The translations under genes were made by a program, and so were the position numbers. From positions 17,546,001-17,610,000 of the forward strand of contig OZ286466.1 in the NCBI GenBank assembly GCA_965644265.1: a DNA stretch of 64,000 bases. The letters run 5' to 3'. Positions 14,689 to 53,019 of the stretch are shown here, piece by piece. A model generated the notes under the pieces. The model was not told where the DNA came from. It saw only the letters and a program-made list of their open reading frames with translations, and ran no database searches. This DNA is from Glycera tridactyla. Taxonomy: Eukaryota. The first letter of the stretch is position 1. The number at the start of each line of letters is the position of its first letter.

Positions 14689-14841
14689 CAGGGCGAGAAG
14701 ACAACCTGAAAATCCACCTGCCCCCCTGGAAAATCCACCTGCCCTGCCTATATATGCAAGTCATTTATGCTCATTTTCCACCTGCCCACCTGGAAAATCT
14801 ACCTGCCCCGGGCAGGAGGGCGGCTATCTCTTCTCACCCTG
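14689..14841. mobile_element. CAGGG-ended MITE (153 bp) with 6-bp TSD, nested in the hAT element
   Basis: TIR CAGGG(C/T)GAGAAGA. TTACAT is duplicated on both flanks. Internal AAATCCACCTGCCC repeats. Confidence 0.85.
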
Positions 14842-14930
14842 TTACATAGAATTTCACCAGTAGAAATAAATGACATGAAATTGCAGCAGCTCTCAGGATA
14901 AATTTGCCAACTGCTCATGGCATGGTCACC

Positions 14931-17203: not shown

Positions 17204-17224
17204 GTTGACCAGGTCACTACCCCA

Positions 17225-29883: not shown

Positions 29884-29949
29884 TCCAACCATGGTAATGG
29901 GGGGGGGGGATTGCGATCCTTTTGGTGACACACACGTAACGTGTGCTAT

Positions 29950-30726
29950 GGCGCTCTCTGAGGTCACCTGCTTGGATTGAGGGAGGGGGGACACTCCAGA
30001 CTATTGGAGTATAAATCATGGTTGGGTTTTGGCATCTTCCATGTATTTTCTGAATTTTGCAAATTCTGGTTTGGAAAACCTCATGTGAGGGGGAGCCTAA
30101 TTTTGGGCTAATTTTGGGATATTGTTCATTAAATTGGTGGGGTAAACCCGCATGGAAACTATTTCCAATTGCCCGGGGTGCCACCTTGGGGTGACCATTG
30201 CATTGCAATTGCTGGTATGCAATTAGGATCAATTGCATAATCTTTACATTGTGGTGCCAATTGCCGTGTGGCATTGGCTAGTAGACTAAGTGCCTGCAAT
30301 ATTCAATAGCTCAGGGGTGCATGCTGCAATTGGCAGCAGCAAATAGTTGTTGAATTCAGCTGTATAACAGCTAGGTTGTTATGTGATTGAGTTGGGTTGA
30401 CATGGGGAGCTAATTCCTCATGATAATATGTACAAGTAATTTATTGTTGGTTATTGTGTGTTAGTATTGGTGTTTTGTCAGCATGATGGACATCTAGGGC
30501 AACCAGGAGCTGATGTGGGGAAATTGGACACAGGCTGTGGTAGGGTTGTTTGCCCGGTCCACACCTGTGTAAAGTTTTCTCAGATAAGGAGGTAGAGTGG
30601 TTTGCTCGGCTTCCAAGTCATGATAAGCAGAACCTGGGATGTTGTGTTCCATGTATACTGACACAGTGGGGGAGGAAATAAAATACCATATTTGAATATT
30701 TATTTGTTGGGTCTTGTGTCAGCAAA
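29950..30726 (+). repeat. Ngaro repeat B1 (777 bp), identical by eye to B2 at 30927-31703
   Basis: Direct sequence comparison from GGCGCTCTCTGAGG to GTGTCAGCAAA. Confidence 0.95.
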
Positions 30727-32139
30727 ATAGCCATTGTGCAACAAAGGGCATTTGCTGAGCAAGACGGAACCCGTGGGGGAGAAAGTGGTGTCCCCGGCGG
30801 AAAAATTAACGATGCGCGCATGCGCAGTCGGAACAAACGGTCACGTGACCGCCTCCCTTTCGCCCGCCGCCATTTTACCAGCCATACCGCAGGTCATTTT
30901 AGTGGCCACCACCCGCCCCACCACCAGGCGCTCTCTGAGGTCACCTGCTTGGATTGAGGGAGGGGGGACACTCCAGACTATTGGAGTATAAATCATGGTT
31001 GGGTTTTGGCATCTTCCATGTATTTTCTGAATTTTGCAAATTCTGGTTTGGAAAACCTCATGTGAGGGGGAGCCTAATTTTGGGCTAATTTTGGGATATT
31101 GTTCATTAAATTGGTGGGGTAAACCCGCATGGAAACTATTTCCAATTGCCCGGGGTGCCACCTTGGGGTGACCATTGCATTGCAATTGCTGGTATGCAAT
31201 TAGGATCAATTGCATAATCTTTACATTGTGGTGCCAATTGCCGTGTGGCATTGGCTAGTAGACTAAGTGCCTGCAATATTCAATAGCTCAGGGGTGCATG
31301 CTGCAATTGGCAGCAGCAAATAGTTGTTGAATTCAGCTGTATAACAGCTAGGTTGTTATGTGATTGAGTTGGGTTGACATGGGGAGCTAATTCCTCATGA
31401 TAATATGTACAAGTAATTTATTGTTGGTTATTGTGTGTTAGTATTGGTGTTTTGTCAGCATGATGGACATCTAGGGCAACCAGGAGCTGATGTGGGGAAA
31501 TTGGACACAGGCTGTGGTAGGGTTGTTTGCCCGGTCCACACCTGTGTAAAGTTTTCTCAGATAAGGAGGTAGAGTGGTTTGCTCGGCTTCCAAGTCATGA
31601 TAAGCAGAACCTGGGATGTTGTGTTCCATGTATACTGACACAGTGGGGGAGGAAATAAAATACCATATTTGAATATTTATTTGTTGGGTCTTGTGTCAGC
31701 AAATTATTGATGACGGACGGACGGACGAACGGACGAGCAACGAGTGGCTAGCGTTGCTGATACGACTAACCGACGTACTTGGTGCCCTTACCCTGTTACC
31801 AGAGGGTTCACCCCACTAATTTAACCCTCCCGTCCTTAACAACTTCGGCAGGGCAAAAAGGTGGTGGGGAAGTCGTTGCCGAGATTGAGGTCGGAGTTGG
31901 GCACAGACGCGTGTACGGGCGCTTAGCGGCAGATCCGAGGAGGAGGAGGAGGGCGGGGGCCCGGCCGGCGGGAACAGCGACGGCGCCGACCTGAGTGGTA
32001 GTCCGTGCCGAGCAGTCAGTCTGCGTTCTACCGGGCGTTCTACTTCGCATCACAAGCTGCACCGCACTTCCTCACCGATAGACGTACGCAGTCTCCCCGT
32101 ATCTGTGTCACACTCACTACAAACAGCCATCCGATAAAC

Positions 32140-32158
32140 ATGGAGAAACAGCAAGCAG
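32140..32158 (+). CDS. Putative coding exon 1 (MEKQQA + G) of the His/Met/Cys-rich protein gene
   Basis: Strong Kozak-like AAACATGG, then the donor CAG|GTGAGT (phase 1), inside a CpG-rich region (31704-32400). The phase is compatible with the acceptor at 47285. Confidence 0.65.
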
Positions 32159-33482
32159 GTGAGTTCTTCCCGATGGGGTCCTGATGATTTGGACAGGGTT
32201 GCAGAGGACGCGAAAGTCTTGAGAGGACGCATGTTGAGCACGTGGTGTCCCGGGGCACGAGCCTGTGTCTGTGGCGGGAGTTAATTTGAGGGGAATGTGA
32301 GGGTTGACACGTTCGGCTTCGCTTGTGTACGTGATATCAGAGTTGCGCTGCTGCAAAAACATACACTGTGGTTTGAAACAACAACATTCGTGACATATTT
32401 AAATCCATGCATTGCGCTCAGCGAGGGGCGGTGGTTTCAACCAGGTGAAAATGAGATGGTTGATTTATTGTTCAGTGTTTGTGCTATATTGAGATGCCCA
32501 TGGGTGGGACATTCATGACTCCTCTCTCTGGATCATGGAATCATGTGTTAGGAAGGTGAACAAGACAGACAATTCTCATGTTTATTCATCTCCAACCATG
32601 GCCTATTTTCGAAGCTAATGTACAGATGACTGCATGGTCAAACTAGACCGGGAGGCCTCAAATGGTATTTAACAAACCATATCATGATAAAGAACATGCA
32701 AACTTTTTATCAAGATCCACATTAATTCTCACAGCAAAAACAAAAGGAATGTGTGCATGAATTATATTGCCTATGTTTCACTTTGGGGTATAATGTATGA
32801 AGATACTAACACCATAAAGCCTGGATTGCTGGAGACCATAATATATACAGTGAGTGTGGTCTCCCAAAAGAGGGGTCTCCCAAGACAGGTTTCACTGTAT
32901 ATGTATTACGGTCTCCTGCTTGATTTGACAATCAAACCAAGCAGGAGACCATAATATATATACAGTGAAACTGGGAGACCGCTCTTTATCGGCTCTTCTA
33001 TATTCGACATCGTCAAATATACCTCCAGTGAAAGACCACCTGTCTTGAGACCGCTTTTCATTGGTGTTTGGGGCGGTCTTCCCTGACAGGTTTCACCGTA
33101 TAACATATCTATATGGAGAACCTGAGAGTTTCTGACTGGGACAGAACCTTTTGACGTACATTATATCTTTTGTCATTTTAATCTGCTTGTCTGTTTCAGT
33201 CTCCAGCCCCTACCCCACTCCTTGCTTTCAGCACCCCCCCCCCCCCCCCCACCTTGACCATCCCTCACCCCATGTTCACTGACACACCTATGTTGCATGC
33301 TACGAGCTAGATCCTTGCTGGTGAGACATAGTTGCTGTGCAGTGTCCATGTGGAAGGGGGACAGTACCACAAATTCACAAACACACCTCACCTTATCATA
33401 TGTGAAACACACACCACACACAGGAAAGCCCAGTGTGACGTGTTCACCATGCAATACAGCCAAGAATATTTAATGAGAAACT

Positions 33483-33535
33483 GTGTGTGTGTGTGCCTGC
33501 ATGTATGTATGTATGCATGCATGCATACATGCATG

Positions 33536-33583
<48 letters not shown>

Positions 33584-33715
33584 CGTGTGTGTGCAGAGAT
33601 ATGTGTGCTGGCTTACATTTGCATACAAGGAGGCCTGCTCACTTGCCCCTGGACATGGACGCATGGCATGGACAGATATACAGAATATTGCAAGCACGAC
33701 TGCACAAGATCTCAT

Positions 33716-33778
<63 letters not shown>
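33483..33778. repeat. (TG)n and (CA)n microsatellites in inverted arrangement
   Basis: (TG)n at about 33483-33595 and (CA)n at about 33717-33778. Confidence 0.9.
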
Positions 33779-33779
<1 letters not shown>

Positions 33780-35499
33780 TGGAGGTTCACATGCATGAAT
33801 GAGTTAGAGCAATTCATGTCCTGATGAGGTCTGCTAGTAATTGCCTATCTTCACCTGTGGCCATCAAACCCTGGCAAAAAAGATTATTACAGGTGTGTCC
33901 TGGGAACATACCTCATGGAGCTACTCTCCTGTTAACATTAGCAGTGGTGCCAGTTTAATAAAGAATTTGGAATTCCAAAAATTTGGTGAAAAGTAGGAGA
34001 CGAGAAATTGTCTTAAATCTTGCTGGAAGTGTGAGGATTAATACTTTTGAGAGAATTTTGGGGTAGGTTTGCGGGTCAATTATGTGTCTGTCTATGACTC
34101 TATAGGAACTCATTGTTGCCGCTGAGCATCGCAGGTCAAGTGGATGATCAGTCCCCCAGACACGTATGGATTGTATTATTGTTGCAATTTGACCAACCAC
34201 ATGAATACGTGAAGGAATTAATTCCATATGTATTTGTGCCTATAACTACAGTGGTCGCGCTAGGAATTTGTCAAGTGGGGTCCCGGGACCCAAGCTCATT
34301 GCAAAAATGGGGTCCCCACTCAGATTTTGGGGTCCCATTTTCACTTTGCTCAAAAAAGAGCATGCCCGTGTGTGTGTGACCGACATATTTTTCACTCTAT
34401 TTGACTCTGTATTTCAATACATTCACTTACGCATCCAACCATCATCTGAATAGCATCAGTGTTCTGCTCGATCAGGGGGATATTTCTGATGATCCGAGTG
34501 AATCATGTTCAGAATAGTGTTGATTATTCAAATATATTAAATCCACTGAACTAATCATTCTGCCAATGAAGGACTAATTAATATGCACCAGATAGGTGAT
34601 TTTGAGATAAAATATCATTCATGTTGAATGACAACTTTGTCCTTTTTGGTCAGTTCTCATCACCCAGCCACACCAAACTTGACCTAGATGCATTTCATAG
34701 CATTCTCTTATGAATTCTGGCCATGATTCTCTCAATGAGGCGTATCAATTTTGGGGACAGTAATGCTTTTCAGAATTGGAATTTTCTAGAGGAGGTAGCT
34801 GTCACCCCTCTCTGGAAAATAGAGGGCATTTTCAGGAAAATAGGGGGTTCTTGGAGGGAGGGTGATTTTTTTCACGCAATGCCATGATGTTTCAATAAAG
34901 ATAAGCTTGGTAGTGTGGCCAGGTGAAAGCAACTACCCAGGAAACATAATAGACAATGTCATAATAATGAATCAATCAGGCTTAATGATGAGAAGAAATG
35001 TGCCCCTCCATCCAGAAACAAAGAGCTGAGGGCCTATGCCCCTTTCTTCATATTCAGTGAAATGCCAATTCAGCAAAGTTAGAACCACTGACAAGAGCCT
35101 ATTTCTTTTGAGAGGTCACATTTCGATCACATACACAGGGATGCCAACTTCTGATGACCAAAATTAGTACTGATGGTGATCTCCGAAAGTAATGATGGCA
35201 ATGATTGCAGTACTGAAATAAGAGGATCCTCAATATCTTATCTATCAATATTACACATATTATTGAAAAATCTTTGCTCTTAAAGGGGAGTTGGCCTTGG
35301 AGGGGATGGGGTGTTACTCAAATGACAATATGCAACCTGTTCCCTCGGAACTTTTATCCCCCCCTCCTCAGGGGCATAATAATGCGTCCCTAGGACGCAC
35401 ACAGGATGTTATTTTTGCGTCCCTGCCGATAAAATTGCGTAGGGACGCAAGATTTTTGCGTTAACGCGATCACTGAACTATATACTGTTACATACTGTA

Positions 35500-35743
35500 A
35501 TGCATTATTTGTGTATATTACCTGAACCAGTCGACTTAAACCTCGATGTGCTCTATATATTTTGCTTTCTTTAATTACTCATTCAAAGTGCTATGCCTTT
35601 TTAGATCGGTGAGTTGTTGAGTGTTTGCATAAGCACTTAATATGACCCTTCGGGGTCATGTGTAACAACTGTATACTTGTTCCCTTGTATATATGTTCAA
35701 ACTTATGCAATAAAGTTATTTCTGATTCTGATTCTGATTCTGA
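35500..35743 (+). mobile_element. LINE/SINE 3'-end fragment with stem-loop and (TTCTGA)n tail
   Basis: Hairpin ATGACCC-TTCG-GGGTCAT (35642-35659), AATAAA at 35709, then four TTCTGA repeats. Confidence 0.7.
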
Positions 35744-36719
35744 TAGGTTCAGAAAAATTATAATTCCAAAAATTCTGCATCATGTCATTGGCATCCCTGT
35801 ATTAGGCCTTCAGAATAATTGATTATGTACCATGAAGGTGGTTGGTGATTCAATAATTGTGGCCAACAGGATCACTGAAAAATGGAAGTTTGCGACCCTG
35901 GTACAACCCCATAAAGTGCCTAGTTTCAGGAAGTGGCCAAAAGCCAGATAAGTTTAGTGACACAAAGTTTCGAGGGTCATACTAAGAGTCGAAAAGTCAA
36001 ACATGATTTTGTGATATAATTTGTTTACAACCTGTGGAGGAAAAAACAGGAAATTTTGCACTTGTGTGATAAGTTATGGTGTGTTTTAAAGATTCTTTTT
36101 AGATTTTCCTGGCATGCTGGCTGTCAAATATCGCACTCGTTGAACATTATTTTTGGCTCGCATGCGAAGCTAAATGCGAGTCTTTGTGATCACGCAGTTG
36201 GTCCGGCCGTCCGGCGTGAAGGTCTGAGGTTAAGGTTTTGGTTAAAGTTTTTCTTTGAAGCCCCACTCGGCTAATATTGCACCTACATTCTTGAAATTTG
36301 ATATACATATGCATCAGTAGTTGGACAACAACGTAGGAGCATTCTTTTCATAATCCATCTCATATAGTTGGGAAATTCTGAGAGAAAAGAAGACTTTTTA
36401 TTTGTGAGTTTGGAATTTATTGAGACAGCTGGACCCATTCATTCTGCCTGAGTTGCATAAGACACCACGGAAATCTACATGATTCTCCGCCTGTCCTTTC
36501 ATTGTTGGGGAAGGCTCTCCCGGTGACTCTATTGTTCTGGCTCTGTTACATAACCGTCTAATCAGTTTCATGCACCAACTGCTACATCAAGCGCTGTATA
36601 AATAGATGGACCTAAGTTCACTTTGTCATACATACACTAGTATGCATATCTGATTATTTGCTCCCTCGAGCACAGTATAGATGGACCTCATTTCACTTTC
36701 TTATACATACACATGTATG

Positions 36720-37085
36720 GGTGGGGGTGGGACCACGGTTGAGGGGAAGTGTTGGGCAGGGGGGGGGGGCAGGGAAGGGGGGGGCTGGGGATGGGTGATT
36801 GGTGGGGTGAGTTCTGTGGTGGGTGTGGGGTAGGGTTGGTTGGGATTGGTTGGTTGGTTCCGGGTGGGGGGGGGGGAGGGGGTAAGGGCCAGGGATGGGT
36901 AGCAGTAGGGGTGGGGGTGGGGAAGATGGCTGGGGGTGGGGGAGATGGGTGGTGGTGGGCTGCAGATATGGGGGTGTGTGTGTGTGTGAGGGGGAGGGTG
37001 GGGGATTGGTGGGGTGGGGGTGGGGTAGGTAGGGCCTGGGGTGGGTGAGTGGGGGAAGGGTGGGGTGGTGGGGCACACACACACA

Positions 37086-37115
<30 letters not shown>
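36720..37115 (+). repeat. G-rich low-complexity tract plus (CA)/(CGCA) microsatellite
   Basis: Dense GGG runs with G-quadruplex-forming potential; the ORFs called here are compositional artefacts. Confidence 0.85.
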
Positions 37116-37118
<3 letters not shown>

Positions 37119-38585
37119 AGATGTGTCCCCTTTCGACAAGCGGCGTGCATGCGAGCCTTTTGTGCATTTATGCCTTGTTTTTGAATGGACTAACTAAAGT
37201 TGCCATGTTTGGTGGTCTAGGTTTTCAGCAAATATTGCCATAGTACAACCCGCTATTTTATCTAGATTCAAGTTTATGATGATAGTGTCACGTTCGCCCA
37301 TGTTACTGGCTCTATCTCAAGTGGAGAAATGTCCCAGATAATTATTAGCTGACGTATTTAGAGGTTGAGAATCACCTCATGATAAATAGAGATGTCAGCG
37401 CACCTCTTGACATTGATTCTCCGTCTCCAGCTCCTGTATCCTAGCAAGGCCTAGATGAATGGAAATCCTGGCCCAATGACCCCATGCTGTAGCAAGTTAA
37501 TAAGTAATAACATTATTGTCTCTGATGATGAGATATCTCAAATCATTAAAAAAAAATACTGAAAACCATCAAAATGTGTTGATAGGGTCATTTCGTTGAC
37601 CTATAGTTATTTCGTCTCCATTGGATATTGCGTCATGTTGTGTGGATGTGACTCAGTGGTGAGGGTCTCTGCCTCATGTTCCTGTTACATCTGGGCCATA
37701 GCCCGGGGCAGAGGGGGGGGGGGGGGGGGGGGTGGACATGTAATTATGCCGTTAAATACTTGCTTTATCACACTTCTTCCCTGCTTTGTTGAGAGAATCA
37801 CCCACAGATGTCACAAACTTCAGTTTGCATTGGTTCTAAGAAGGACCAATGTGGACAAATATATCAAATAGATTCAAAACCATTTTTCACTTCTTATTAT
37901 TGCATTGTTGACCATCAATGGTGCTGTTCATGTATGGATAATTTTGCCCCCTTCTCTCAAACGAGGTATCTCTCCTAATCAATCAATCAATCAATCCATT
38001 TTTCCCAGTAATCTTAATTTTTAAAGTTGTCTTTGTACTGCATCATCTGGGTGTGTGGGCAAAAGGTCTGCACCATCCATTCATCTGAGAGCAGAAGATT
38101 TCCAGTGGAGCTGAGCTGTGAAAATCACCATATGTGCTACATCTACCCTCTTTTTTAAAGACACCACACTGTGGACTGACTCCTAATTAGGAGGCGACCA
38201 TATGGACCAGCTCTAACTTCATGTATTCATGCTAAGATGTGAACCTTAACACCTTAGGTGCTGTCACAAGGGGGAGTCCTCCTTTGAGACTGACTCATCT
38301 GGAACTTTTTGGTCCCCATGATCTTATGCTCAGGGTTTGTGAGAGTGATGCCTGCAGGGAACAGAACATCCAGATTTCATGAATCAGGTGGATATGGCAT
38401 ACATATTTGGGGTCAATACCTGATATTAAAGTAAAACCAAAACTATTAATCAGGATCTTTGTTAACCACAAGCTTAGCGAAGACTTCAAGATACTGTCAA
38501 ACTTGTCTTGGGCATGAAGCCTTGGAATGAGAGATGTGACACAATTGTGTGATTAGAGCAAGTTCTGGCTTAGTACAGGTCAAGT

Positions 38586-39340
38586 TTGTTTGTTTGTTTG
38601 TTTGTTTGAGGCTCAACGGCATGTATCACCCCACAGGATTATGTATGCCGTGTGTTCCAGGTTAATGAAAGCTAGATGGTCTCTCCCCTGCAGACATCAC
38701 TCTCACAAACCCTGAACACAAGATGATGGGGAACTCCCTGAAAGGTTGTCAAGTGGAAGTAGCTGATGGTTCAGACACACCCCTACCAACTCTTAACTCT
38801 ACAAAAAAGACATATTGAACCTGATGATGGCATATCTGAATATGTAACTGGCTGGAAGCTAACACTCAAGCCTGATAGCTATGCTTTTTTTTTTTTACGC
38901 AAAGCGCAGTACTTGAAACAAAGAAAAGCATTAGGTTCAGAGAATACTCAAACAATGTCTTCAATCACGAACTGTCAACTTCAAATCAGCTTTACAATCA
39001 TGGCTTGCCCTATGCTTGCAGTACAATGCCATCACACAACCTAGTAAACCTAGTCGCAGCCCTAGTAACCCAGAACTGGTGTGCCTGGTACCCGCGTTTT
39101 GCATAGTGACAATATCTGCTACAGGCAAACCATCAGCCACCTACACCCGAGACCATTTCACTGTAGAAATAAGAAATAGCTTAGAGGGATAGGAAAGAGG
39201 TCAAGAAAAAGAAATCTGGTGATAGTGCAATTTTGGTAGAAAATGCCTAAAGATAGATGATAGAAAATTTTTAAGGTATGTTTTCATTCAACCCCCCATT
39301 CCAAAAGATATTGAGAAGAAGAGAAGGGATGATGCTACAC
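38586..39340 (-). repeat. Dispersed SINE-like retroposon family 1 (about 750 bp, (CAAA)n tail)
   Basis: A near-identical inverted copy lies at about 50990-51780. Further copies or fragments at 11060-11160, 13272-13591+18802-19140, 38290-38350, 51780-52270, 55910-56200 and 57570-57660. Confidence 0.85.
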
Positions 39341-40960
39341 CTAGGCCACATCATCCCCGATGGCAACACTTCAGAGTAAAAGTCCCGCGCCCATTGGTGG
39401 CTGCCATCTATAGAGACCCTGGACTCCCACCTCGCGACTAGTACAGGTCAAGTATAGTGAAACATATTCTGGTGGGATCAATAGAATATTTTCGCCAAGA
39501 ACTAGTTCCCGAGTAGGACACTTTTAACTGTAGTCATACCAGACTGTAAATTAAAACATTTACATATGAAGGTTTACAATAATTCAGAGCCATTTTGGAC
39601 GATGACCTCAACAGGTGGCTGTTATGTACCATTGTTCTTGACGCTTGGTATCTACATCGGCTGACTCGGGGCATTGTTGACTGACACTGTGTCACAAGAC
39701 CAAGCTCCAGCTCTTTCACGAATGTTGCTTGGTGAATATGAAGAAGTTTGAACTAGAAACTTGAATATGGATAAACTTGCACAAGATCACCTCTCACCAA
39801 GTAGGGGTAGAAATCGGTTGCAAGTCCGCAATCGATCATCTGTTGGGCCTTTCCAACCGATGATCGGTCGAAATTGGTTACGGGAAAGGTGAAATTTTCC
39901 AACTAAGCTTGGAATACTTTATCAAGCCCCAACCAAGCTTGAATTAAAAAGCAACGCAAATATCAGCATATCAACAGTTCAACTGATCAAGCGCTGGGTC
40001 GCCATCAAATTACATCGATTATCTCATTTCATCAAGAGAAAACCACTGAAAACGTGCGATTTACGATGACACCACACTCGCCGAAAAATTCGTATAACGA
40101 AATATCAAATGACTATGGCTTCTCGCAACATTCCTACCCACTACGAACAGACGAACGTATATTTGAATTCATCTTGCGTGCCGATGTTGACAACATGGCT
40201 TCTCGGCGAGACTGATTCCTCTTGCGCAGACACCATGTGGCACTGCAAAAATACATTTAAACTCCGCCATCTCACGGATTTTCTTCGAACTGCGCTTCTC
40301 GTTTTCGTTTGCAAACACGCAGGTTTCGCCCAGCAAGATGGCGCGACGAATAAATGAACGAATGCCGCATTTTTCTCTCTCATTTTCGCGAATGTAACGT
40401 TTGATGACAGATCTGCTCTGGTTCCTATTTTGTCGATTACCGATTTTCGCAAGTAAGCGCTTGATTCGTCACGGCAACCAACCGACTTTCGACTAGATTC
40501 GATCATCGTTCTACCACTATCACCAAGACATCCATTTTTGATGCAATCTGTGGGTGGTCTTTGTAGACAGGTTTGAATGTACATTGGTTTACAGGCAGAG
40601 GCAGTGAAACCTGTGATGAGAGACCACTCTGAATTTCACTAAGAAGTGGTCTCAGTAGAGGTGGTCTTGTTTGAGGCATATTTGACTTATGTCAAATGAG
40701 AGAATTATGTCTCCGCCCTGATGGGGAAGACATATAGAATTCGTATTGTCCGTCTGTCCGTCTGTCTGTCTGTCTGTCTGTCAAAAAAACCTTGTGAGCA
40801 CGATTGCAGCAAAACTACTCATCCGAATTGGATGAAATTTAGAGGGTATATCCCTTGGGATAGTCTAATGAACTGATTAGATTTTGGTCCATGTGACATA
40901 ATTTTCAAGATCACCAGAGGCCCAAATTTCACCCAAATTTCACCAAAGAGGTACCAACCT

Positions 40961-42727
40961 TAATTATACCCCCCCAAACGAAGTTAGGGGGGGTATACTG
41001 GAATCACCCCGTCCGTCTGTCCGTCTGTCCGTCCGTCCGTCTGTCTGTAGACGGAGTCGTTTCCGGATGATTTCTCAAGTTTACCTTCACTCATTGATTT
41101 CATATTACATATACACATCACCCAAATAGAGAGGAGGAACCCTATTGTTTTTGGGGTCACTAGGTCAAAGGTCAAGGTCACAGGAGGTCATTTCATGGGA
41201 AATCACATTTTCGGCTCCTCTGACCTCAATTTTCGAGTACCGTATTCTCCCTAATTAGCGCCCCGGGGCGCTTGATAATTGAGAAAGGGGGGCGCTTATT
41301 TGTTCGAGATCTGTCAAAATTGCCGATGGGCGATAATCGGGTATTTTGGCGTTCATAACGCCAATGGCCGGCGAAATATGAACGAAACATTCGATAAACG
41401 TATTACTCGGTATCTATTTGTGTCACATAAGAGAAAAAACGATAAAACTACAAGGATATGACAAAAATTTGCCGAATAAACATTGATAAATAACAGCATT
41501 TGCTGCCGTCTGCATAACCAGTCCCAATTTGACAAGTCAATCCCTTGTTTTTAGACGTAGTTTTCCGCGATTAAAACCCACGAAATATCGAACTCACAGT
41601 AAAAACGATGGTGTGAATGAATTCCTAGGTATAAAATTGTGTGGTATCCATGCATAAATCTCTCAAATCTGTCGAATATTCGCCGAAAACGGCGGAAATA
41701 TCGAGCGGCGATGAGTGGCATCTTCATCCACGTGCGCGCCGCCATGTTGGATCTGGCTTCCTCGCTGGCTCAGAAAGGGCGGGAAATTCAAACGTCCGGG
41801 AGTATCAAAGCCGATCGGCAACTACTCCCTCCCACGGGAGGGGGGGGGGGCGCTCATGAGGGTCGGGGCGCTAATTAGGGAGAATACGGTAATTGCTTTC
41901 ATATTTGGTATGTGAACAGTGTGTCAGTATCTATTTCACATAAGTTCCGGGTTTTATGATGCAATTGTTACTTTTGGCGTCATGGGGCTGAATGTTAAGG
42001 TCACCAATACAATCCATTTATGTACAAGCTGCCAGTGTGTAGGCAGAATGGTTTCCGGATGATTTCTCAAGTTTGCCTTGCCTTATTGATTCCATATTAC
42101 AGGGACACATTACCCATACTAGGCAAAAGAACCCTATCGATTTTGGGGTCACTAGGTCAAAGGTCAAGGTCACGGGAGGTCACATCACTGGAAATCACAT
42201 TTTTGTCTCCCCTGACCTCAATTCTTGAGCAATCGCTTTGATATTTGGTATGTGAACAGTGTGTCACTTCCTATTCCGCCTTAGTTCCGGGTTTTATGTT
42301 GCGATTGTTACTTTTGGCGTCATGTCACAACCCATTTATAAGCTGCCTGTGTGTAGGCGGAATGGTTTCCGGATGATATCTTGAGTTTGCCTTCCCTTAT
42401 CAATTCCATATTGCAGGCACACATCACCCATACTGAGCGAAAGAACCCACTCGATTTTGGTTTCACTAGGTCAAAGGTCAAGGTCACAGGAGGTCACTTC
42501 ACTGGAAATCACATTTTCGACGCCCTGACCTTAATTCTTGAGCAATTGCTTTGATATTTGGTATGTGAACAGTGCGTTGCTATCTATTTCACATAAGTTC
42601 CGGGTTTTATGATGCGATCGTTACTTTTGGCGTCATGAGGCTGAATGTCAAGGTCACAGGGCACAATTCGCCTTCATTGATAGCGGCGAGGGGGGGGTAT
42701 TAATTTGCCTCTGGCAATAGCTCTAGT
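40961..42727 (+). mobile_element. Helentron-associated non-autonomous element (HINE/DINE-like)
   Basis: 5' hairpin TATACCCCCCC-N10-AGGGGGGGTATA, a (GTCC/GTCT)n microsatellite, internal tandem units with GGTCAAAGGTCAAGGTCAC, and a 3' end ...GCAATAGCTCTAGTT. Related elements at about 36130-36350, 40705-40950 and 42890-43300. Confidence 0.75.
41240..41889. mobile_element. TA-flanked Tc1/pogo-type MITE (650 bp) nested in the HINE
   Basis: TIR CCGTATTCTCCCTAATTAGCGCCCC at both ends, with a TA duplication. The flanks rejoin into the HINE unit CTCAATT..GAG-TA-ATTGCTTT. Confidence 0.9.
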
Positions 42728-44790
42728 TAAACTCAGTCTCTATTGTGACCTTCCGGAAATGAACTACTTCTGTTGCCTCTCCATTAATGGTTATGTAAGA
42801 GTCTTCCGGTCATACAATGCTCCTTGGTCATGCTTCAATGACTCCTCGTTGATTTCAATTCCCCTCTCTCCTCAAACAAAAGCCCAAACTTAATTAACTT
42901 CCCTGTTGGTGTGTGTGTGTGTGTGCGAGCGCACACACATGTGTGTGCGCCTTGTTGCTACCTGTGAATATCCAATGGCTATTATACTTGGCATATTGGT
43001 ATATAATTGCTGTTAGCAATTTGACAGTCATACCCCCCCCCCCCCGGTGTTGGTTCACAGGGGGGGGGGGGGGGGTATGTGTGTGTGCATGTACATGCTC
43101 CATGTTGCCAAGTGTGAATACCCCATGGCTACCATACTTGTGATATTGGTATCCAATTGCTGTTAGCAATTTGAGAGTTATGAATACCCCCCCCCCCCCC
43201 CCCACCCCCTGTTGGTTGGGTGGGTGAAAGAGATGATGGTTTCCGGATAACTTCATGAATTTCAGGGCTAGCTGTCTCAAACTTTGTGTGCCTCCTTTCC
43301 TAGACTATGGATTTACATCTTGAATTTCAAGGTCACTGAGTCCAAAATGGTTTCTTCATGAGTTTCGCAGGTAGCCTTCTCAAACTCTCATAGATTATGG
43401 CAACACACCCATCGATTTCTCAGTGGCCAGCTTCAATTTCAAGGTCACTTGATGGAAAAAAAGGTCAAAAGAGTTTCTGGACAATCACTTCATAAATTAC
43501 AGGGGTGGCTTTGACAAACTTGGTGTACAGACATTCCCAGGCTATGGCAAGATTTTGGGGTTGCCATCTCAGTGTGCATCTACAGGCTAGTGGTGATACA
43601 CTGGTATGGTGCCAACAGGTCAAAGGTCAAGGTCACAGGAGCTATTTTCAGAATTTGAGAATATGGACAAATCTCACTTGGTGAATTGATCTAGTTTCCT
43701 GGGTCACTGATCAAGACCTGATCAAGATCTTCCCTTGTCAGCAAGATTCCACTCAAACCCCTGACCCAAATTCAACTGAATTTCTCTGATGCCCAGGCAT
43801 ATTCTTGAGGACAAATCCTACACAAAGAGAGCCCCCCCCCGTACCCCAGTACACCTCATACCCCAGGACACATTTTCATACTCATGACTAGGTATACTAC
43901 ATCATTGGTCACTCAAAGGATAGTTGTCAACCAATGTCTAGCGTTTCAGTGAGCATGCTCACTTGAAGATGAATAAACAAGCAGGTGGACCCAGGCATGT
44001 ATGCGGGTAGTGAATAATTACAAAGTCTGGGGGAGACATATTGAGTGAGGAGGTGCCTCACTGAAATTCTAGTTGCCATTTGAAAGAGGTCTCCCAACAG
44101 AGGTGGTTTCTCATCACAGGTTTTATTATATCTTTCAGGCAAATCTTGTCTCACTTGTCATTTGTATAGTCTGACCTGTTTACAAAGACCTCCTTGATTC
44201 TGGCAAGTAGTGTTCCATGGACAGATGGTCTTTGTTACAATGTTTTTTGTTTACAATATACTATACACATTGATCACTTATTTAGGTGACCTTTGTATGC
44301 AGGCGTACTCTCAAGATTGTCCGGATGTACCAGTGCTGAGCCACGACACTGAGACAGACAGGTGGCTCCTGACACTACACAATATAGCACATATGGCACC
44401 GAAATGAATTGAAACCAGAACTAACCTACCAACGACCATAGTCACACCACTTGGTGTGTGTGTGTGTGTGTTTGCTTGTGCTTGTGCTGCACTTGGTGCT
44501 TTGAACATCCTGTATCCAGGCATGCCATGCATACTCACTGACAGATGTATACATCTCCGGCAACTAGAAATGTAATATTGTTGAGGTTCCCTTGTATATT
44601 CCACCATTAAGCTCCGAATATGTCAAAGGCGAATGTGGCGGCCTGACAGATATTTACCAATAATTCCAGCAAATTCACCAAAGACATACAATGAAATGAT
44701 GGCGTATCCTCTTCAAAAGCATGCGAATCACCTGAAAACAGGTTCAATGATCGCCGGAAGATCTATACATTCTATTTGTGCCATTAAAAC

Positions 44791-45182
44791 TAGTGTTAGG
44801 ACGATTCACTCAGAAATCGATTTAATCGATCAAATTCAGTTTCGATTCTACTAATCGATGTTACTTTGTCAGAATCGATTTTTTGGCTTTCATTTCCACC
44901 AGGACAGATTTCGTCATTAAATGTATTTTTTTTTCAGAATAATCAGGTTCTAGTTATCATTTTTCAAGATTTATTAGTCTATCTTTCACTCTCCAGCATC
45001 TTTTGACTCTTTTCACAGATGAACTCTTGCCTTCTCTCTTCTCAAGTCATGTCAGTCACCATCCTCCATGCATCAAATCAGTCTTCTTTGACACTTGATT
45101 AAACATCAATTATAATCGATAAATCAATCAAAATAAATTCTGATTAATCGATTCCTAAAATAGGTACCGATTCCTAACACTA
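44791..45182. mobile_element. hAT-type MITE (392 bp) with 8-bp TSD
   Basis: TIR TAGTGTTAGGA...TCCTAACACTA. ATTAAAAC is duplicated on both sides. Subterminal AATCGAT repeats. Confidence 0.9.
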
Positions 45183-47285
45183 ATTAAAACTAAAACCAGA
45201 AGAGAAATGGTGAAGGAGAGTGAATTGGGTTTCGGGAGAGTGAAAAGACCAAGCTGACTCTCCTGATGGGAGAATGGTAATTTTCCTTTGATCAAAAAGT
45301 CATGAATTCATTGTGAGGACAGGACACCACCATTTCAATCCCACCTACCAAAAGAAAATCATTCTCCATGATATTAAGTTGTACATACTCGGACATGTAT
45401 GATTCTGTCGATCAAACATCAGCAAAACATGGGTTGGTGGTACTTGAGGAGTCACTCCCGAGACAGATGAGGTGAAATTCACATCTAGATAAGGCATTTA
45501 CTCACACAAATTTCTTGGCCTCAAAATAACGAAGTTCAAGTTTGATTTCCTAATCATGCTCAGATTCGGCAGAGTGAATTTATGTTCTGGAGAGTGATTT
45601 TTCCTGTTCGCTCTCCTGATGGGAGAATGGCTGAAGAAGTTTTTCCTGAAGACTGGGTAAAAGTGTTTAATGGGCTTGTGAAAATATTGAGTAGAACAGG
45701 TCAAGCTGAAAATCCCTTTTCACCTGTCTGAAGAACAGATGGTGTGAGAACTTGACGTAGAGCCCACAACATTGAGATGTTAATTGAATGGATGTATTTT
45801 GCTTCCTGTCATACTCTAGCTGTCAGTGAGAAGTGGCAGTTAAACTTCACACAGCGCACATGTTACAGTGTTGTGTTACACACCTCCCACCTTGATATAA
45901 TGGTCACCACCTGGCTTACTGGGTGGACCTGGTAACGCCAGCACGCTAATTTGGTATTTTTTAAAGCTGATAACAAACATGCATGCGTTATTGTTCCTTG
46001 CCATTTTCTTCCCTTTATAGCAGTGGAATGAATCTCATATTATCCCCATTCAAGAGACTGTGGGAGCTAATCTTGTATGGATTTTTAGTTTGACTCTTGT
46101 AGAGTTGAGCTTGAACTGAGCTAGGGCTCTACATATTCCTTCAGCTGTCCTTTGGGCAGGGGAAGTGGGATATTCACCAGCCCTCCCTACCTTTTTTCCT
46201 GCCATCTTGCATAAAATCATGAGACAGGGCTCTACATCGCTACTTGCAAATAGCAATTGCTATCAAATATACCCTCTGGCTACCATATCTTATGTTAGGA
46301 GCCAGCTGCCCCTTGAATTTTGAGAGATGGTGATTGGCAATGTATTCACTGGCTACGAAATTTTTTGAGAGCCAGCTTGCTCATAAATATTTTGTCCAAC
46401 CTAGAGCCCTGATAGACTAAATAATGCTTAGAGTAGTTGCCTATCAGGCAGGCAGATGAATAAAATCATCAGCGCTGATAACTAATCTGCCTGTTAGTGC
46501 CAGTATGGTGTGAGCTAGCGATCTTCCTTCCAACTTGTTTCTATCCCCCTTTCCGATTTTACCTGTGAAGAATGAGTGACTGTCTTGAGAGACCAAATTT
46601 CATGCCAGTGCAAAATTTTGGTAGCCAGTGTATATATTGCCAATTACAATGTCAAAATTTAAGGGGCAGCAAGCTCCTAACTTTAAAAAGATGGTAGCCA
46701 GTGGGTAATTTGGTAGCGACTTCAGTGCTTGCTCATCAGATTCCTCTGCAGGGAACCTGTGGCACGATACCCCAATGAGGGGCCACCTTGGACTGAAGAC
46801 CCCATTTTTAGCAGATTCTCTATTTGACAGTCAAATATACCTCTGTCGAAAGATCACCTCTTCAGAGACCACTTGTCGACCCCAACAACAAACAATGCAT
46901 CTGTCTCTCTGTCCATATGTCCATCCATCTATTCACCTCCCCTATCCATCCATATACCGGGGTATTTACCTCCCCTGTTCATCCATCTGTCCNNNNNNNN
47001 NNNNNNNNNNNNNNNNNNNNNNNNNNNNNNNNNNNNNNNNNNNNNNNNNNNNNNNNNNNNNNNNNNNNNNNNNNNNNNNNNNNNNNNNNNNNNNNNNNNN
47101 NNNNNNNNNNNNNNNNNNNNNNNNNNNNNNNNNNNNNNNNNNNNNNNNNNNNNNNNNNNNNNNNNCATCCATTTTTCAGGACAATTGAGAATGAATGGTT
47201 GAGTGATACTGGTGGTGATTACAACCTATGTATATTGACAGCCAGAATACAAGTCTCATCTAATACTGCTGTTTGCTTGTTACAG

Positions 47286-48026
47286 ATCCCCCTGCGGCTA
47301 AGCCGGCAGCAGAAGAGGAAGAGAATGGAGCAGTTCCCGATTCTGCCGAGAAGAAGAAGAGAACACGCGGTCGTCGTGGTCAAGGCAAGGGGAAGGGCTG
47401 GGGCTGTCCACTTGCCATGTACTGCCCGGCTTATAACCCGATGGCTTCGAACATGCTCTCGATGATGCATCATGGTCCGATGATGGGTGGACCGCACGGC
47501 ATGATGGGCGGACCGCACGGCATGATGGGAGGACACCATGGCATGATGGGATACCCCATGATGGGCGGGTATCATGGGATGATGGGTGGATACCATCCCG
47601 GGATGATGGGTGGACCGATGGGTGGATGCCCTGCCATGATGTCATCTGGCTGCCCAGCCATGCAGTGTCCAGCCATCTCTCAAGCCATGATGATGCATCA
47701 CTGCCCAGAAATGATGGGAGAGATCTCCGGCGACAAGAAATCGGGAAAAGGCCACAAAATGTCCGACTGTCCCAAGATTTCGGAGTGTCCAATGTTCTCG
47801 GGATGCCCATACTTCAGTGGGGAGAAGAAAGGTGGAGCCAAAGCATCCGATTGTCCGATGATGTCTGGCTGTCCGTATTTCGCTGGAGGTTCATCAGAAG
47901 GTGAAGAGTGCTGTGAAGAGGGAGAGGAGTGTTGTGAAGAAGGTGGAGAAAAGAAGGAGAAGAAAGAAGGAGAGGAGAGTGTGAGTGACGAAGCTGAGGA
48001 TGATGAATCCGGAGTGCCAACACTCG
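47286..48026 (+). CDS. Exon 2 of an uncharacterised low-complexity protein (basic patch, Met/Gly/His tract, 11 Cys-Pro motifs, acidic CC tract)
   Basis: Acceptor TTGTTACAG|AT and donor CTCG|GTGAGT, both phase 1. 741 nt open, with synonymous variation among the GMMGG repeats. Confidence 0.88.
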
Positions 48027-48838
48027 GTGAGTTGGCTAAGAAAATCAGGACCTTTTTTATTTGTACAGCTGAAAGACTATGTTGACACACATGATGCTAG
48101 GGCAATAGGGACATGAATCATGTCAATTGCCCAAGCCCAATTTCTTATGGGGTTGATCCTGACACCTTGATAAATACCCACAGCAAGTAACATACTGTTG
48201 CTACCCATGACTGAATTTTGAATTGGTATCACCATTATATATTATTGTATTGCAGGGCATGGGTAAAATGCTTTTTGGGTACTTTTTCACTTCATGTAGC
48301 CTAAGCATCATTTAAACAAGACGGCGGGACCAGTCACATGATTATATATGCCATCTTTAGTTTCAACATGTTATTGTTAAGATAGGGGTGTGTGTCTGCT
48401 ACTTCCTCTTTACAACCTTTCACCTCATGTGCAGGAATTGTGAGAGTGACATCCGCAGGGGGAGAGAGCATCTAGCTTTCATTTACCAGACATGGCATGC
48501 ATAATCTTAAGGGTTGCTTCATGCCATTTAACCTCAACCAGACTGAATAAAACCCGAACTTCATGTCAGTGCGAATTGATTCAGTTTCTTAGAATCTGAA
48601 CATGCGGACAAATTCAGGTCCTACGCTGTGACCAGGGTAGGATGCGAAATGAATTCCAGTTCAATCACATTCACTGTCCAGATGCCTTCCACAATCACTG
48701 ATTCGATGCCATTCGATCAAAACCTATCCATTCTTCAAATGGGGATGATGTCTAGATCCAAAAGTCCTTGGTAAAGTATTTATAAGCCAATACATATTCA
48801 GGATGTTTGTGAGCGTGGACACTACTTTCTTGTTGCAG

Positions 48839-49092
48839 GTACCCGTGGTAAAGGATATAGTCATCGCCGTGGCGGACACGGCCGTGGTGGTCACGGTCAC
48901 GGCCATGGTCATGGTCATGGACACGGTCATGGTCACGGACACGGTCATGGATTCGGACACGGTCATGGATTTGGTCATGGATTTGGTCACGGTCATGGAT
49001 TTGGACATGGATTCGGGCACCCACACGGGCGTGGAGGTCGTGGAGGCTGGCGTGGAGGTCGTGGCGGGTGGGGACCATTTGGCTGGTTTTGA
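48839..49092 (+). CDS. Terminal exon 3: GTRGKGYSHRRGGHGRGG(HG)n..GFGH..PHGRGGRGGWRGGRGGWGPFGWF*
   Basis: Acceptor TTCTTGTTGCAG|GT, phase 1 matching exon 2. Gly/His codons vary at third positions (GGT/GGA/GGC, CAT/CAC), a signature of coding selection. Ends in TGA at 49090-49092. A possible polyA signal AATAAA lies at 50694. Confidence 0.88.
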
Positions 49093-51088
49093 GACGTCCA
49101 ACATTTAATTCCTGAATGGCTGCGAGGCAAATGTATCATTCCTTGAATTTATCAAGCTTTGTCAGGAATCAAAACTAATTACACAAATTGCAATGTCTTG
49201 GTCGCAATCAATTTTGCCATCATCTCCATGAAGACTCTCTGTCATTCCATCTATCTACTTCTGGGAAATTCCAAATCATGATTGATCTTGAAAGTCACAG
49301 GTGACTAGCTTTTCTATACCAGATGTGTGAAAGTTTGAGTACACAGTTTCTTGGGAGAGGTCATTAATAGGATGTTCATTGCCCAAACCATGAGAGTATC
49401 GTCAAATGGGATTGTAAAGCACCAAATCTAGCCACAATGAAACAATCAGATTCATGCTTGGAAATTCTACTGTTCAGATGTGCCTTTTTGTTTCATCAGA
49501 TCCTTTCATCATTCTCATCTACACTCGTCACCTCTGAGATGTCATTGGAAATTTAGAAATCCCCATGGTCTGTGATCTGTCATTCTTGAGATCGTAATTT
49601 TGTTGTCATTAAATGTTTCCTGCACTCAGACAGACATTTAGACAACCTGTGAAATTGTGATCACTTAAATATTGTGTGAAATGCCCTCTTGTGTTCAGTT
49701 TCATTTGTTAACAGGATTGATCACTAGATGTCAGTCAGAGCATCATAGATTTTGTCCTCACCGCCAGGTCTGGTGCATCAGTTTGTGATAGCGCCCTCTT
49801 GTGTTTGATTGCAGTGTGGAGAAATCCATTCTCCTCCAGGTGTCACACTTGTCAAGAGTTTGTAATGAGTGGTAAAGGCTGGTTCCTCACTATTTGTACA
49901 TTAATTTGGTCAGCGTCTCAAAATAATTTGTTGATTTTCACTTGAATCGTTGTGCATAAAAATATGAGACTCGGCAACTCTATCAATATGACTTTCCTCA
50001 GATGTGACGATCAAGGTTGTGAAATATGTCCAAATGACACTCAACTGTGTATGTTGTATAATGAAAAAATTGAATCGAATTTGATATATTTGTATGTTAG
50101 TGGTGGATCCAGGGGGTGACACAAGTGTCCCATGCCCCCCCCCCCTTTCAACCACATCATAACCTTTTGATTATTTTTCTATCCACCCCTCCCCTCCACT
50201 CAGCCATGTTTGGTGCCCCATTTCCACAATTTCTGGATCTGCCACTTTTTGTGGGATGACTGTGTAATTCGCACTTTCTCTTGCTTCTTGAGAGCCCCCA
50301 CCAAACTGCAGCAGTCCAGCTTTTTTGTGAGACATGATATCGGGATTCATCCTAAAGTCTATTCTTCGCTTCTTGTTGATCTGGATTGGATCCAATGGTC
50401 AGTGATGATGAACAAAATACAAAAGATGCCCAAGTTCATCTAGAATTTGTGGCCGCTTCTGTGAATGAAGATGGAGTAACCGCCTTATTTGCTGTGGAGT
50501 ATCACTAAAACACAGTTGTGATAATGTTCAATATGAATGTGATCTTTCTCGGGTGGTAGTGTGTTAAATGGTTATTAGAAGAAAATGGTTTTCTGCATGC
50601 AATGCATATAATTGAAGATCTTTTTCTGGTTTGATATATCAATGTTAGCAATGGATGTATCATGTTGAGTTATTTGCCTTTTGATGGTGTTGGAATAAAG
50701 CCAGCCTGCTCTATTTGAGTTGTTGTTTTGCTCATTATTGACACAATTCCTTTAGGGATTTTGTCTGGATTATTTGGTCAGGGTTTAACATTAGGCTTGA
50801 GTGTCAGTCAGTTAGATATGTCATCATTCGACTAAGTGTATCCATGTGAGATTGGTAGAGGTGTGTCTGAGCTGTCAGCTACTCTCATTCTAGTGAAATG
50901 GTCGCAGGTGTAGGTGGCTGACCATTTGCCAGTTCTAGGTTACTAGGACTGTGACTAATTCTATCAGGATGTATAAGGGCATCGCACTGCAAGAAATGGC
51001 TTAGAGGGATAGGAAAGAGGTCAAGAAAAAGAAATCTGGTGATAGTGCAATTTTTGGTAGAAAATGCCTAAAGATAGATGATAGAAAA

Positions 51089-51216: not shown

Positions 51217-53019
51217 TTGGTCTCAGGTGTAGGTGGCTGATGGTTTGCCTGTAGCAGATATTGTCGCTATGCAAAATGCGGGTACCAGGCACACCAGTTC
51301 TGGGTTACTAGGGCTGCGACTAGGTTTACTAGGTTGTGTGATGGCATTGTACTGCAAGCATAGGGCAAGCCATGATTGTAAAACTGGTTTGAAGTTGACA
51401 GTTCGTAATTGAAGACATTGAGTATTCTCTGAACCTAATGCTTTTCCTTGTTTCAAGTACTGCGCTTTGCGTAAAAAAAGCATAGCTATCAGGCTTGAGT
51501 GTTAGCTTCCAGCCAGTTACATAGTTAGATATGCCATCATCAGGTTCAATATGTCTTTTTTTGTAGAGTTAAGAGTTGGTAGGGGTGTGTCTGAACCATC
51601 AGCTACTTCCACTTGACAACCTTTCAGGGAGTTCCCCATCATTTTGTGTTCAGGGTTTGTGAGAGTGATGTCTGCAGGGGAGAGACCATCTAGCTTTCAT
51701 TAACCAGGAACACACGGCATACATAATTCTGTGGGTTGATACATGCCGTTAAGCCTCAAACAAACAAACAAAACAAACAATCGCACTGCAAGCATGGGAC
51801 AACCATAATTGTGATGCTGATTTGAAGTTGACACCTTGTAATTGAACACTTAATGTGTTCTCCAAACCTAATGCAGTCAGGTACTTCCACTTGACAACCT
51901 TTCAGGTCCCCCATCATCTTGTGTTCAGGGTTTTGTGTATGTGATGCCTGCAGGGGACAGAACATCTAGTTCACATTGATAGGAACAGTAAACATATCTG
52001 ATCCTCTGGGTTGTTACAAACTCTAGCAATCAACCAAACAACCGCATCAGAGTATCATTCTTGATACCTGCTGCACAGGTGTCCATAATCTGGGTCTATG
52101 ATGAATGTGAAATCTTACATCAATTTCATCAATCAATCGACTTCCAGGTTCCCCATCATCTTGTCTTCAGGATTTGCTAGAGTGATGTCTGCAGGGGAGA
52201 GAAGATCTGGCTTTCATTGACCAGGAACACATCATATATAACTCCGGATTGATACATGTCATTGAACCCCAAACAATCAATCACCCAGTTTGGTGGCTAA
52301 CATGATGGAATTACCAGGAAACACACTCCGAAGCTACCAATTGGGTCGCCATGTACAAAACTCATGGATCCCATGTATGGCCATTACATGGGCATCTCCA
52401 CCATATCCCAGATGGTAACAGAAATGACACCTTGAGTGTCTGTGAACTTCATGTATTTCCCGACACAGAAGGAGGGGTCCTGAATGATCCACTTATGCCA
52501 CTGCAGAGGCGTAACAATATAGCACATATGGCGTGAGGTTAAACCAGAAGCAATCAATCAATCACATCCCAGGTGGCGCTCTCAAAATGTTGGCCAACCA
52601 ACCAACTACCTGCCTAGCGAACGAACACTCCAGAGCAGACCCAAGTCAAGCATTGTTGATATTGGTGGATGGGCAATCAATTTCAACCACATTCAAGACA
52701 ATGGAGTACATTAGGGCCAAGATCTGTCACCCTCTCTGCTAGGATGCAACAGCACAATCATGCGCAATCGTGGCTGACTGATTGTGGTAAGTCGTTGAGT
52801 GTGTCCTATGCAAAGTCTGTTGTGCATTATTACCATGGTAGAGAGTACCTGACGCCGCTCACCTAATCGATTTCAATCAGAATCGGCGCTGGTTGCAACA
52901 ACGGCTTGTGCTTCCATGTGCAGACTTCTCACAGACGGTAGGTCGTATTTCCTTGCTCATATTACGTCTATATCATGAAGCAGGCAGTCTTTCACCCCTC
53001 CTTCTTCTCCACTCTGTCT

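Follow-up and report, generated by a model that had tools for sequence, protein, structure and literature searches.

A stretch of 64,000 nucleotides of the Glycera tridactyla genome (contig OZ286466.1, positions 17,546,001 to 17,610,000; hereafter the window) carries a genuine, expressed and spliced gene of three exons that has escaped annotation. Its product is a protein of 337 residues in which Cys-Pro (CP) dipeptides are paired at a fixed spacing. The protein is predicted to be soluble and largely disordered. The only look-alikes recovered by sequence search are proteins of an undescribed family, every named member of which comes from chytrid fungi, and the worm protein shares its CP grammar. 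We give an even chance to the reading that the protein is a multivalent scaffold binding haem and soft metals in the nucleus or cytosol.

The coding sequence lies on the forward strand and is obtained by joining window positions 32140–32158, 47286–48026 and 48839–49092, which gives 1014 nt, that is, 337 codons and a TGA. Both introns run from GT to AG in phase 1 and have pyrimidine-rich acceptors that end in cag (CAG/gtgagt ... ttacag/AT for intron 1 and CTCG/gtgagt ... ttgcag/GT for intron 2). Exon 1 (31941–32158, with an approximate 5′ limit) consists of about 200 nt of 5′ untranslated region (UTR), the ATG at 32140, and 19 coding nucleotides, which specify MEKQQA and the first base of D7. 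This ATG is the only one within 31900–32160, and a TAG lies upstream in frame at 31999. Exon 2 (47286–48026, 741 nt; residues 7–254 in part) holds the whole CP array, a Met-rich tract and an acidic Cys-Cys segment. The coding part of exon 3 (48839–49092) supplies a Gly/His/Arg tail and ends in the TGA at 49090–49092. The 3′ UTR begins at 49093, is at least 1.5 kb long and continues past 50600; an AATAAA is found at 50694. As a separate observation, the interval 31900–31990 is rich in G+C (ggaggaggaggagggcgggggcccggccggcggg) and resembles a CpG-type promoter, and GC skew is strong (0.22–0.39) across 24001–32000.

Intron 1 (32159–47285) is 15.1 kb long and holds an assembly gap, microsatellites and interspersed repeats. 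The gap is a run of N at 46993–47165 that stops 121 nt short of the exon 2 acceptor. Its length has no bearing on the reading frame, because the contigs described below join exon 1 directly to 47286. Weak matches of the tail found by tblastn at 33473–33786 and 36700–37120 were considered as spare exons and rejected as (CA)n-type microsatellite or G-rich DNA full of stops. Intron 2 (48027–48838) is much shorter, at 812 nt.

A run search returned 11 matching sequencing runs from four studies, none of them recorded as RNA. Contigs of four runs, which carry two organism labels and come from two studies, were mapped on 47166–50600. In all four, contig depth is zero in 47166–47280 and in intron 2, except at a repeat near 48431–48545. 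Cover is continuous on 47283–48025 and extends over most of 48838–50600. The joint 48025/48838, which becomes 48026/48839 when the cut is moved by +1, is present in all four runs, each of which skips exactly 812 nt bounded by GT and AG. Upstream of 47283, contigs of all four runs continue as loose ends of 129–215 nt, which places the 5′ end of the transcript near 31941. The last 30 letters of these loose ends, GCCATCCGATTAACATGGAGAAACAGCAAG, are those of window positions 32126–32155 with one substitution (32136 A>T). The junction 32158/47286 is exact, since the CAG at 47283–47285 can be read both as the last letters of exon 1 and as part of the acceptor. One X1 contig of 2056 nt runs unbroken through 47501–48025 and 48838–50320, which ties no less than 1.2 kb of 3′ UTR to the coding part. 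The remainder, 50320–50600, is covered by separate, shorter contigs with small holes, and continuity with the coding part is shown only as far as 50320.

The first-pass annotation had proposed, from the letters of the window, this same model of 337 residues with three exons and canonical phase 1 splice sites, and had named the junctions 32158/47286 and 48026/48839. Sequence and contigs bear the model out, and both junctions occur in the contigs of all four runs. An alternative first exon that adds a signal peptide would, by its own account, have told against the proposal; none appears in any of the four runs, where rare forms may be lost from the contigs. That the runs are RNA is a guess from their small size (27–85 million letters) and their exon-only coverage, which fit transcriptomes. 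A processed DNA copy of the gene, rather than RNA, may alternatively lie behind contigs that contain exons only. Gene predictors miss the gene because exon 1 codes for six residues, the last exon lacks an ATG and the protein is of low complexity.

Differences between the contigs and the window show how the coding sequence has varied. Among the 18 coding differences listed, 17 fall on the third codon position and 16 are synonymous (11 of 12 in exon 2 and 5 of 6 in exon 3); the exceptions are M198K and H314Q. The synonymous fraction expected for this coding sequence is 0.23, which gives P = 6e-9 for 16 of 18. Coding indels measure 18, 18, 6 and 12 nt, all multiples of three, and those in the UTR measure 3, 1, 1, 8, 3, 19, 5 and 1 nt, mostly not multiples of three. 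The protein is thus under purifying selection, since 16 of the 18 differences are synonymous and every coding indel is in frame. An in-frame insert of 18 nt behind 47846 or 47851 is found in all four runs and adds a further CP unit of six residues, SDCPKMADCPMMSGCPYF or SDCPMMAECPMMSGCPYF; the window therefore holds a short allele, lacking one CP unit. Two modules of the longer alleles, SDCPKISECPMFSGCPYFSG and SDCPMMAECPMMSGCPYFAG, are parallel duplicates of 20 residues. Two runs also show length variants in the tail, with a gain of 6 nt at 48888 (one Gly-His pair) and a loss of 12 nt at 48961, which shortens the GFGH block by four residues.

The translated protein is a string of compositionally distinct modules, and the motifs reported in the first-pass annotation (KKKRTRGRR, the HGMMGG tract, 11 CP dipeptides, the acidic segment with Cys-Cys pairs, the tail of 20 His and the RGG boxes) are all present in it. 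The basic patch KKKRTRGRR (47351–47377, residues 29–37), read from the sequence, resembles a classical nuclear localisation signal. It is followed by the first CP pair, GCPLAMYCPAYN (47402–47437, residues 46–57), which aligns with unit 1 of the chytrid proteins, GCPLAEKCPWYE. Next comes a Met/Gly/His/Pro/Tyr tract (47438–47623, residues 58–119) with 19 Met, 20 Gly and 8 His, arranged in about seven heptads of the form HGMMGG(P/Y); its DNA repeats with a period of 21 nt at 47480–47551 and 47558–47614. CP units 2–5, namely GCPAMMSSGCPAMQCPAIS, HHCPEMM, SDCPKISECPMFSGCPYF and SDCPMMSGCPYF, occupy 47624–47881 (residues 120–205). They are followed by the acidic Glu/Lys-rich segment EECCEEGEECCEE (47882–48026, residues 206–254), which has 20 Asp and Glu and four Cys in 48 residues, the latter as two Cys-Cys pairs. 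RGG boxes together with (GH)n and GFGH repeats make up the tail (residues 254–337), whose 84 residues include 40 Gly (48%) and 20 His (24%). Its DNA repeats with periods of 6, 12, 18 and 30 nt, and the protein ends in RGGRGGW...GPFGWF (...GWGPFGWF). The 11 CP dipeptides begin at residues 47, 53, 121, 129, 134, 146, 168, 174, 180, 196 and 202. Over its whole length the protein has 15 Cys (4.5%), 31 His and 22 aromatic residues.

The maximum Kyte–Doolittle mean over 19 residues is 0.63, and the N-terminal 30 residues average −1.43. There is neither a signal peptide nor a membrane helix, because the protein has no hydrophobic segment. The absence of a signal peptide had been noted in the first-pass annotation and agrees with the same hydrophilic exon 1 in all four runs. 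The protein is probably nuclear or cytosolic. AlphaFold2, run with an alignment of 25 sequences, modelled the worm protein at a mean predicted local distance difference test score (pLDDT) of 50.3; short helices that follow CP motifs are the only structured elements. A chytrid relative (P0024) reached a mean pLDDT of 52.2. Fold matches to models near a pLDDT of 50 would be meaningless.

Homology searches used the exon 2 product or the coding pieces as queries. Neither coding piece belongs to a Pfam family; a TrAA12 match at E 0.32 was judged to be due to chance. A word-index protein search with exon 2 gave no match, the ESM Atlas searched by features gave no usable neighbour, and a profile search of the PDB with the family alignment gave nothing at E ≤ 1. 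The earlier remark that the protein is not recognisable as a known family stands, with Pfam, PDB and Atlas all blank. An exhaustive phmmer search of 1.84 billion protein representatives with the exon 2 product returned six matches, at E values from 1.2e-26 to 2e-4. Five of these are hypothetical chytrid proteins, from Quaeritorhiza, Clydaea/Lobulomyces, Kappamyces, Chytriomyces and Batrachochytrium, and the sixth is the product of an unnamed metagenomic contig. A profile search with the family extended the set to 31 proteins, and every named one belongs to Chytridiomycota; the genera include Spizellomyces, Powellomyces, Rhizophlyctis, Geranomyces, Rhizoclosmatium and Obelidium. A metagenome scan with the worm protein found no relative, and no animal relative was found in the word-index, phmmer, profile or metagenome searches. 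Unannotated orthologues could escape in the same way, because the worm protein is itself absent from the libraries searched.

The chytrid proteins, among them BATDEDRAFT_24269 of Batrachochytrium dendrobatidis, SPPG_08063 of Spizellomyces punctatus and KAJ3091548.1 of Quaeritorhiza haematococci, are covered by no Pfam family, and we found no mention of them in the literature on the chytrid locus tags or on Cys-Pro repeats in chytrids. A typical member has about 200 residues and consists of a signal peptide, five CP-x4-CP-[YWF][YF] pairs, a His/Gly tract of the PHPHGxAHGHGHD type (for example PHPHGQAHGHGHD), a last CP and an end of the HDEL/KDEL type. In longer members, this super-unit is repeated up to four times. 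The C-terminal ends are HDEL, KDEL, HNEL or SEEL, and the combination of signal peptide and HDEL-type end places these proteins in the lumen of the endoplasmic reticulum (ER). In a permissive Pfam scan of the family, one member matched Cyto_heme_lyase at E 1.6 and several gave weak CCCH zinc-finger matches. Two Kappamyces gene models (P0004 and P0016) carry a Ulp1/SENP-type protease domain (PF02902) fused to the CP-repeat array and end in HDEL; these are either real fusions or merged neighbouring genes.

The CP modules are thus not unique to the worm gene, a point absent from the first-pass annotation: the same CP-x4-CP-aromatic grammar runs through a chytrid-wide family. The two share the repeated CP-x4-CP-[YWF][YF] units, an HHCP unit, a DCP(V/M)(L/M)xGCP(H/Y)(F/Y) unit that follows CPxxSxCPY(Y/F) at the same distance in both, a tract rich in His and Gly after the array, and the lack of a confident predicted fold. 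The signal peptide, the HDEL/KDEL-type end, the one to four super-units and the Lys-rich spacers are found in the chytrid members only, whereas the Met tract (an insert of 62 residues rich in Met, Gly and His), the acidic Cys-Cys segment and the RGG boxes are found in the worm protein only. The ER features in particular are missing from the worm protein, whose N-terminus (MEKQQADPPAAKPAAEEEE...) is hydrophilic and whose end is GWGPFGWF.

A hidden Markov model (HMM) built from chytrid sequences only scored the worm protein at 40.5 bits, against at most 7.2 bits for 1000 residue shuffles. The CP region alone scored 44.5 bits, against at most 19.0 bits in 2000 shuffles that kept every CP dipeptide, and the best single stretch was residues 143–220, at 29.8 bits. 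Since the shuffles score far lower, the shared grammar (the spacing of four, the aromatic pair, HHCP and DCP(V/M)(L/M)xGCP) goes far beyond composition. These comparisons show that the worm protein and the chytrid family are related at the level of motifs. In the MAFFT alignment the worm protein spans one super-unit, its Met tract stands as a single insertion that no chytrid sequence shares, and there are invariant Cys and Pro columns in CP units 2–5. When the five worm CP blocks were permuted, the native order scored 43.4 bits, the median being 38, and ranked 9th of 120, which is not significant. Of the eight orders that scored best, seven did no more than keep blocks 4 and 5 adjacent, and these two blocks are internal duplicates in the worm. 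A collinear domain of 150 residues had been considered and, given this rank, was dropped as a demonstrated result. In a maximum-likelihood tree of 24 units, the worm branch measures 6.1 substitutions per site, with deviant composition and an unresolved backbone. No donor or placement can be named, because the worm branch is long, its composition deviant and the backbone weak. Common descent of the worm protein and the chytrid family has about an even chance, and horizontal transfer between chytrids and the worm is no more than a possibility.

These same results bear on a second explanation, in which the gene is a fast-evolving, lineage-restricted orphan of low complexity. The likeness to chytrid proteins would then be convergent or coincidental, and the modules would be filler, spacer or the marks of a young gene, with no specific role for a ligand. 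The rank of the native block order leaves collinearity over the whole domain undemonstrated, the long branch has no placement in the tree, and the searched libraries hold no animal relative, all of which suit such an orphan. The two main worm modules are also internal duplicates, and slippage is ongoing, as the repeat-number polymorphism shows. Against this stand the strong purifying selection on the coding sequence and the conservation of every Cys and Pro of the CP units in the alleles seen. Moreover, the matches among 1.84 billion representatives form one coherent family rather than an assortment of Cys/Pro-rich proteins. We consider the orphan explanation unlikely.

A bolder version of the relationship can be put forward. 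The CP-x4-CP-aromatic-aromatic array could be a new, cofactor-dependent domain for binding haem or metal, confined to chytrids, where it would act in the ER lumen, and to one annelid lineage, where it would act in the nucleus or cytosol. Exon 2 would descend from a fungal coding region without introns that arrived by horizontal transfer; the export and retention signals would have been lost through a new first exon 15 kb upstream, and the Met and Gly-His tracts added by slippage. We regard this scenario as speculative and improbable.

With the scaffold reading, binding would be multivalent and reversible, with the CP thiolates taking up haem while Met, His and Cys take up soft or borderline metals (Cu, Zn, Ni, Cd), and the role would be that of a buffer, carrier or sensor. 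A switch of the paired cysteines between thiol and disulfide is also conceivable, as in the haem-regulatory motifs (HRMs) of haem oxygenase-2. The modules form a string that begins with the patch resembling a nuclear localisation signal, the first CP-x4-CP pair and the HGMMGG tract, expanded by slippage and offering thioether and imidazole groups. It continues with four more CP units of the CP-x4-CP-aromatic-aromatic form that have His nearby, the acidic Cys-Cys segment, and the (Gly-His)n/GFGH tail set in RGG boxes. Both Gly-His repeats and Met-rich tracts that contain His are established ligand sets for Cu, Zn and Ni. The HRM is defined as a Cys-Pro core that is usually preceded by basic residues and followed by a hydrophobic one (PMC2742820). 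CP is the commonest transient haem-binding motif and forms five-coordinate thiolate complexes; a nearby His changes the coordination of haem at CP motifs, and haem can pass to it (PMC10377097). In the worm protein, the residues after the successive CPs are L, A, A, A, A, E, K, M, Y, M and Y, so that nine of the 11 are hydrophobic or aromatic. Lys occurs within four to five residues before four of the CPs (47, 168, 174 and 196) and is absent there from the others, and several CPs have His or Tyr a few residues away. In the permissive Pfam scan, the model that matched the most family members (10 of 25, best E 0.12) was Preseq_ALAS, the HRM-bearing presequence of ALAS (5-aminolevulinate synthase), and the family also has His/Gly tracts. 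For the intracellular metal/haem buffer or metal-responsive condensate proposed in the first-pass annotation, this support is circumstantial.

Several points weigh against a haem- and metal-binding role. The Preseq_ALAS matches are all below threshold and amount to a lead, and the worm protein has none at E ≤ 1. Low-complexity tracts of Met, Gly-His and RGG also occur in proteins that have no metal role. The paired cysteines of the ER-lumenal chytrid relatives may simply be disulfides. Nor does a CP equal haem binding, because the paired HRM cysteines of haem oxygenase-2 have been reported to be a thiol/disulfide redox switch and not to bind haem per se (PMC2742820).

The tail and the basic patch also fit a third explanation. 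The protein could be a scaffold of a redox- or stress-responsive condensate, or an RNA-binding scaffold, in which the RGG boxes and the Gly/aromatic tail would bind RNA and demix while Met and Cys sense oxidation instead of binding metal or haem. RGG boxes flank a tail that ends in RGGRGGWRGGRGGWGPFGWF and has 11 aromatic residues, the patch resembling a localisation signal suits a nuclear role, and the predicted structure is disordered. Met oxidation is known to regulate the phase separation of Met-rich low-complexity domains (review PMC8394241). Left without explanation are the strict pairing of Cys-Pro, the fixed spacing of four residues and the aromatic pair that follows. The presence of the same CP grammar in ER-lumenal chytrid proteins that have no RGG boxes is not accounted for either. 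We hold it to be a minor possibility, and it is not exclusive of haem and metal binding; both can hold.

If the scaffold reading is true, the worm protein and the chytrid family together define an undescribed ligand-binding repeat, in which paired Cys-Pro motifs at a fixed spacing are each followed by two aromatic residues. The idea of the HRM, so far that of a lone regulatory tag, would then be widened to an entire multivalent scaffold. The chytrid family spans Chytridiomycota, including the amphibian pathogen Batrachochytrium. The gene is also a clean case of a well-supported animal gene overlooked by gene predictors. Its odd phyletic pattern (chytrids and one worm lineage) raises a testable question, that of transfer versus convergence.

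The surroundings of the gene are rich in transposons, and no second recognisable host gene was found in the 64-kb window. Intron 2 holds an interspersed repeat of about 160 nt (48394–48553), copies of which in the window are about 73% alike. Diverged copies lie at 51599–51774 and 56056–56208 on the forward strand and at 38600–38766 and 13278–13440 on the reverse strand. Flanked by many different sequences, this repeat has a summed contig depth of 4,000–20,000 in the four transcript-like runs, and it looks like an abundant, widely transcribed element of the short interspersed element or miniature inverted-repeat transposable element kind. An Rfam search of 31000–51500, which includes this repeat, gave no match. 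Transposon reading frames lie on the reverse strand at 3769–6417 and 14931–17203. They include a Gypsy-type pol with RNase H and integrase domains, whose closest relatives are elements of marine invertebrates (Mytilus, Priapulus and Batillaria) and of host DNA that was binned with the genomes of symbionts. Other frames are hAT-like transposases with a hAT dimerisation domain and a C17orf113-type zinc finger.

The worm protein can be compared with several known systems. Metallothioneins contain about 30% Cys in C-x-C, C-C and C-x-x-C clusters and few aromatic or His residues. The worm protein differs in each respect, with the Cys, His and aromatic contents given above, and has no Pfam metallothionein match. 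Met motifs form Cu(I) sites in the ectodomain of Ctr1, in CopC/PcoC and in CueO. In these sites and in the yeast redox sensor Pbp1 (PMC8394241), as in the worm tract, Met is clustered with His in flexible, Gly-rich sequence. The worm tract has no sequence relationship to any of them, however, and its HGMMGG heptads are a local expansion by slippage.

The annelid jaw proteins Nvjp-1 and Nai11527 are Gly/His-rich, bind Zn and are intrinsically disordered (PMC13120676, PMC9465683). They come from the same phylum as the worm protein, if the annelid assignment holds, and share with it Gly/His richness, disorder and a sequence of the metal-binding type, on a comparison made by description and not by sequence. 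The tail composition would thus also suit a structural protein of metal-hardened tissue (jaw or chaetae), similar to the Gly/His-rich jaw proteins of Nereis and exported non-classically. Yet nereid jaw proteins are secreted with a signal peptide and are Gly/His-rich over most of their length (PMC13120676), whereas the worm protein begins with the same hydrophilic exon 1 in four runs and is Gly/His-rich only in its last quarter (residues 254–337). We judge a jaw or chaetal role to be very improbable.

The HRM proteins (haem oxygenase-2, ALAS, haem lyase and IRP2) share with the worm protein the Cys-Pro core and the hydrophobic or aromatic residue next to it. A further likeness lies in basic residues that often precede the motif, His or Tyr nearby, and multiple copies in flexible regions (PMC2742820, PMC10377097). 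Known HRMs are present as one to a few motifs on folded enzymes or regulators, whereas the 11–12 CPs of the worm protein are the core of a disordered one. The fixed CP-x4-CP spacing of the worm protein is not reported for HRMs in PMC2742820 or PMC10377097. The worm protein is outside every described family. Its nearest neighbours in sequence are the undescribed chytrid proteins, yet two features that define their family, the signals for export and for ER retention, are missing from it. By analogy, its mode of action would be most like that of an HRM protein in which 11–12 paired motifs form the core.

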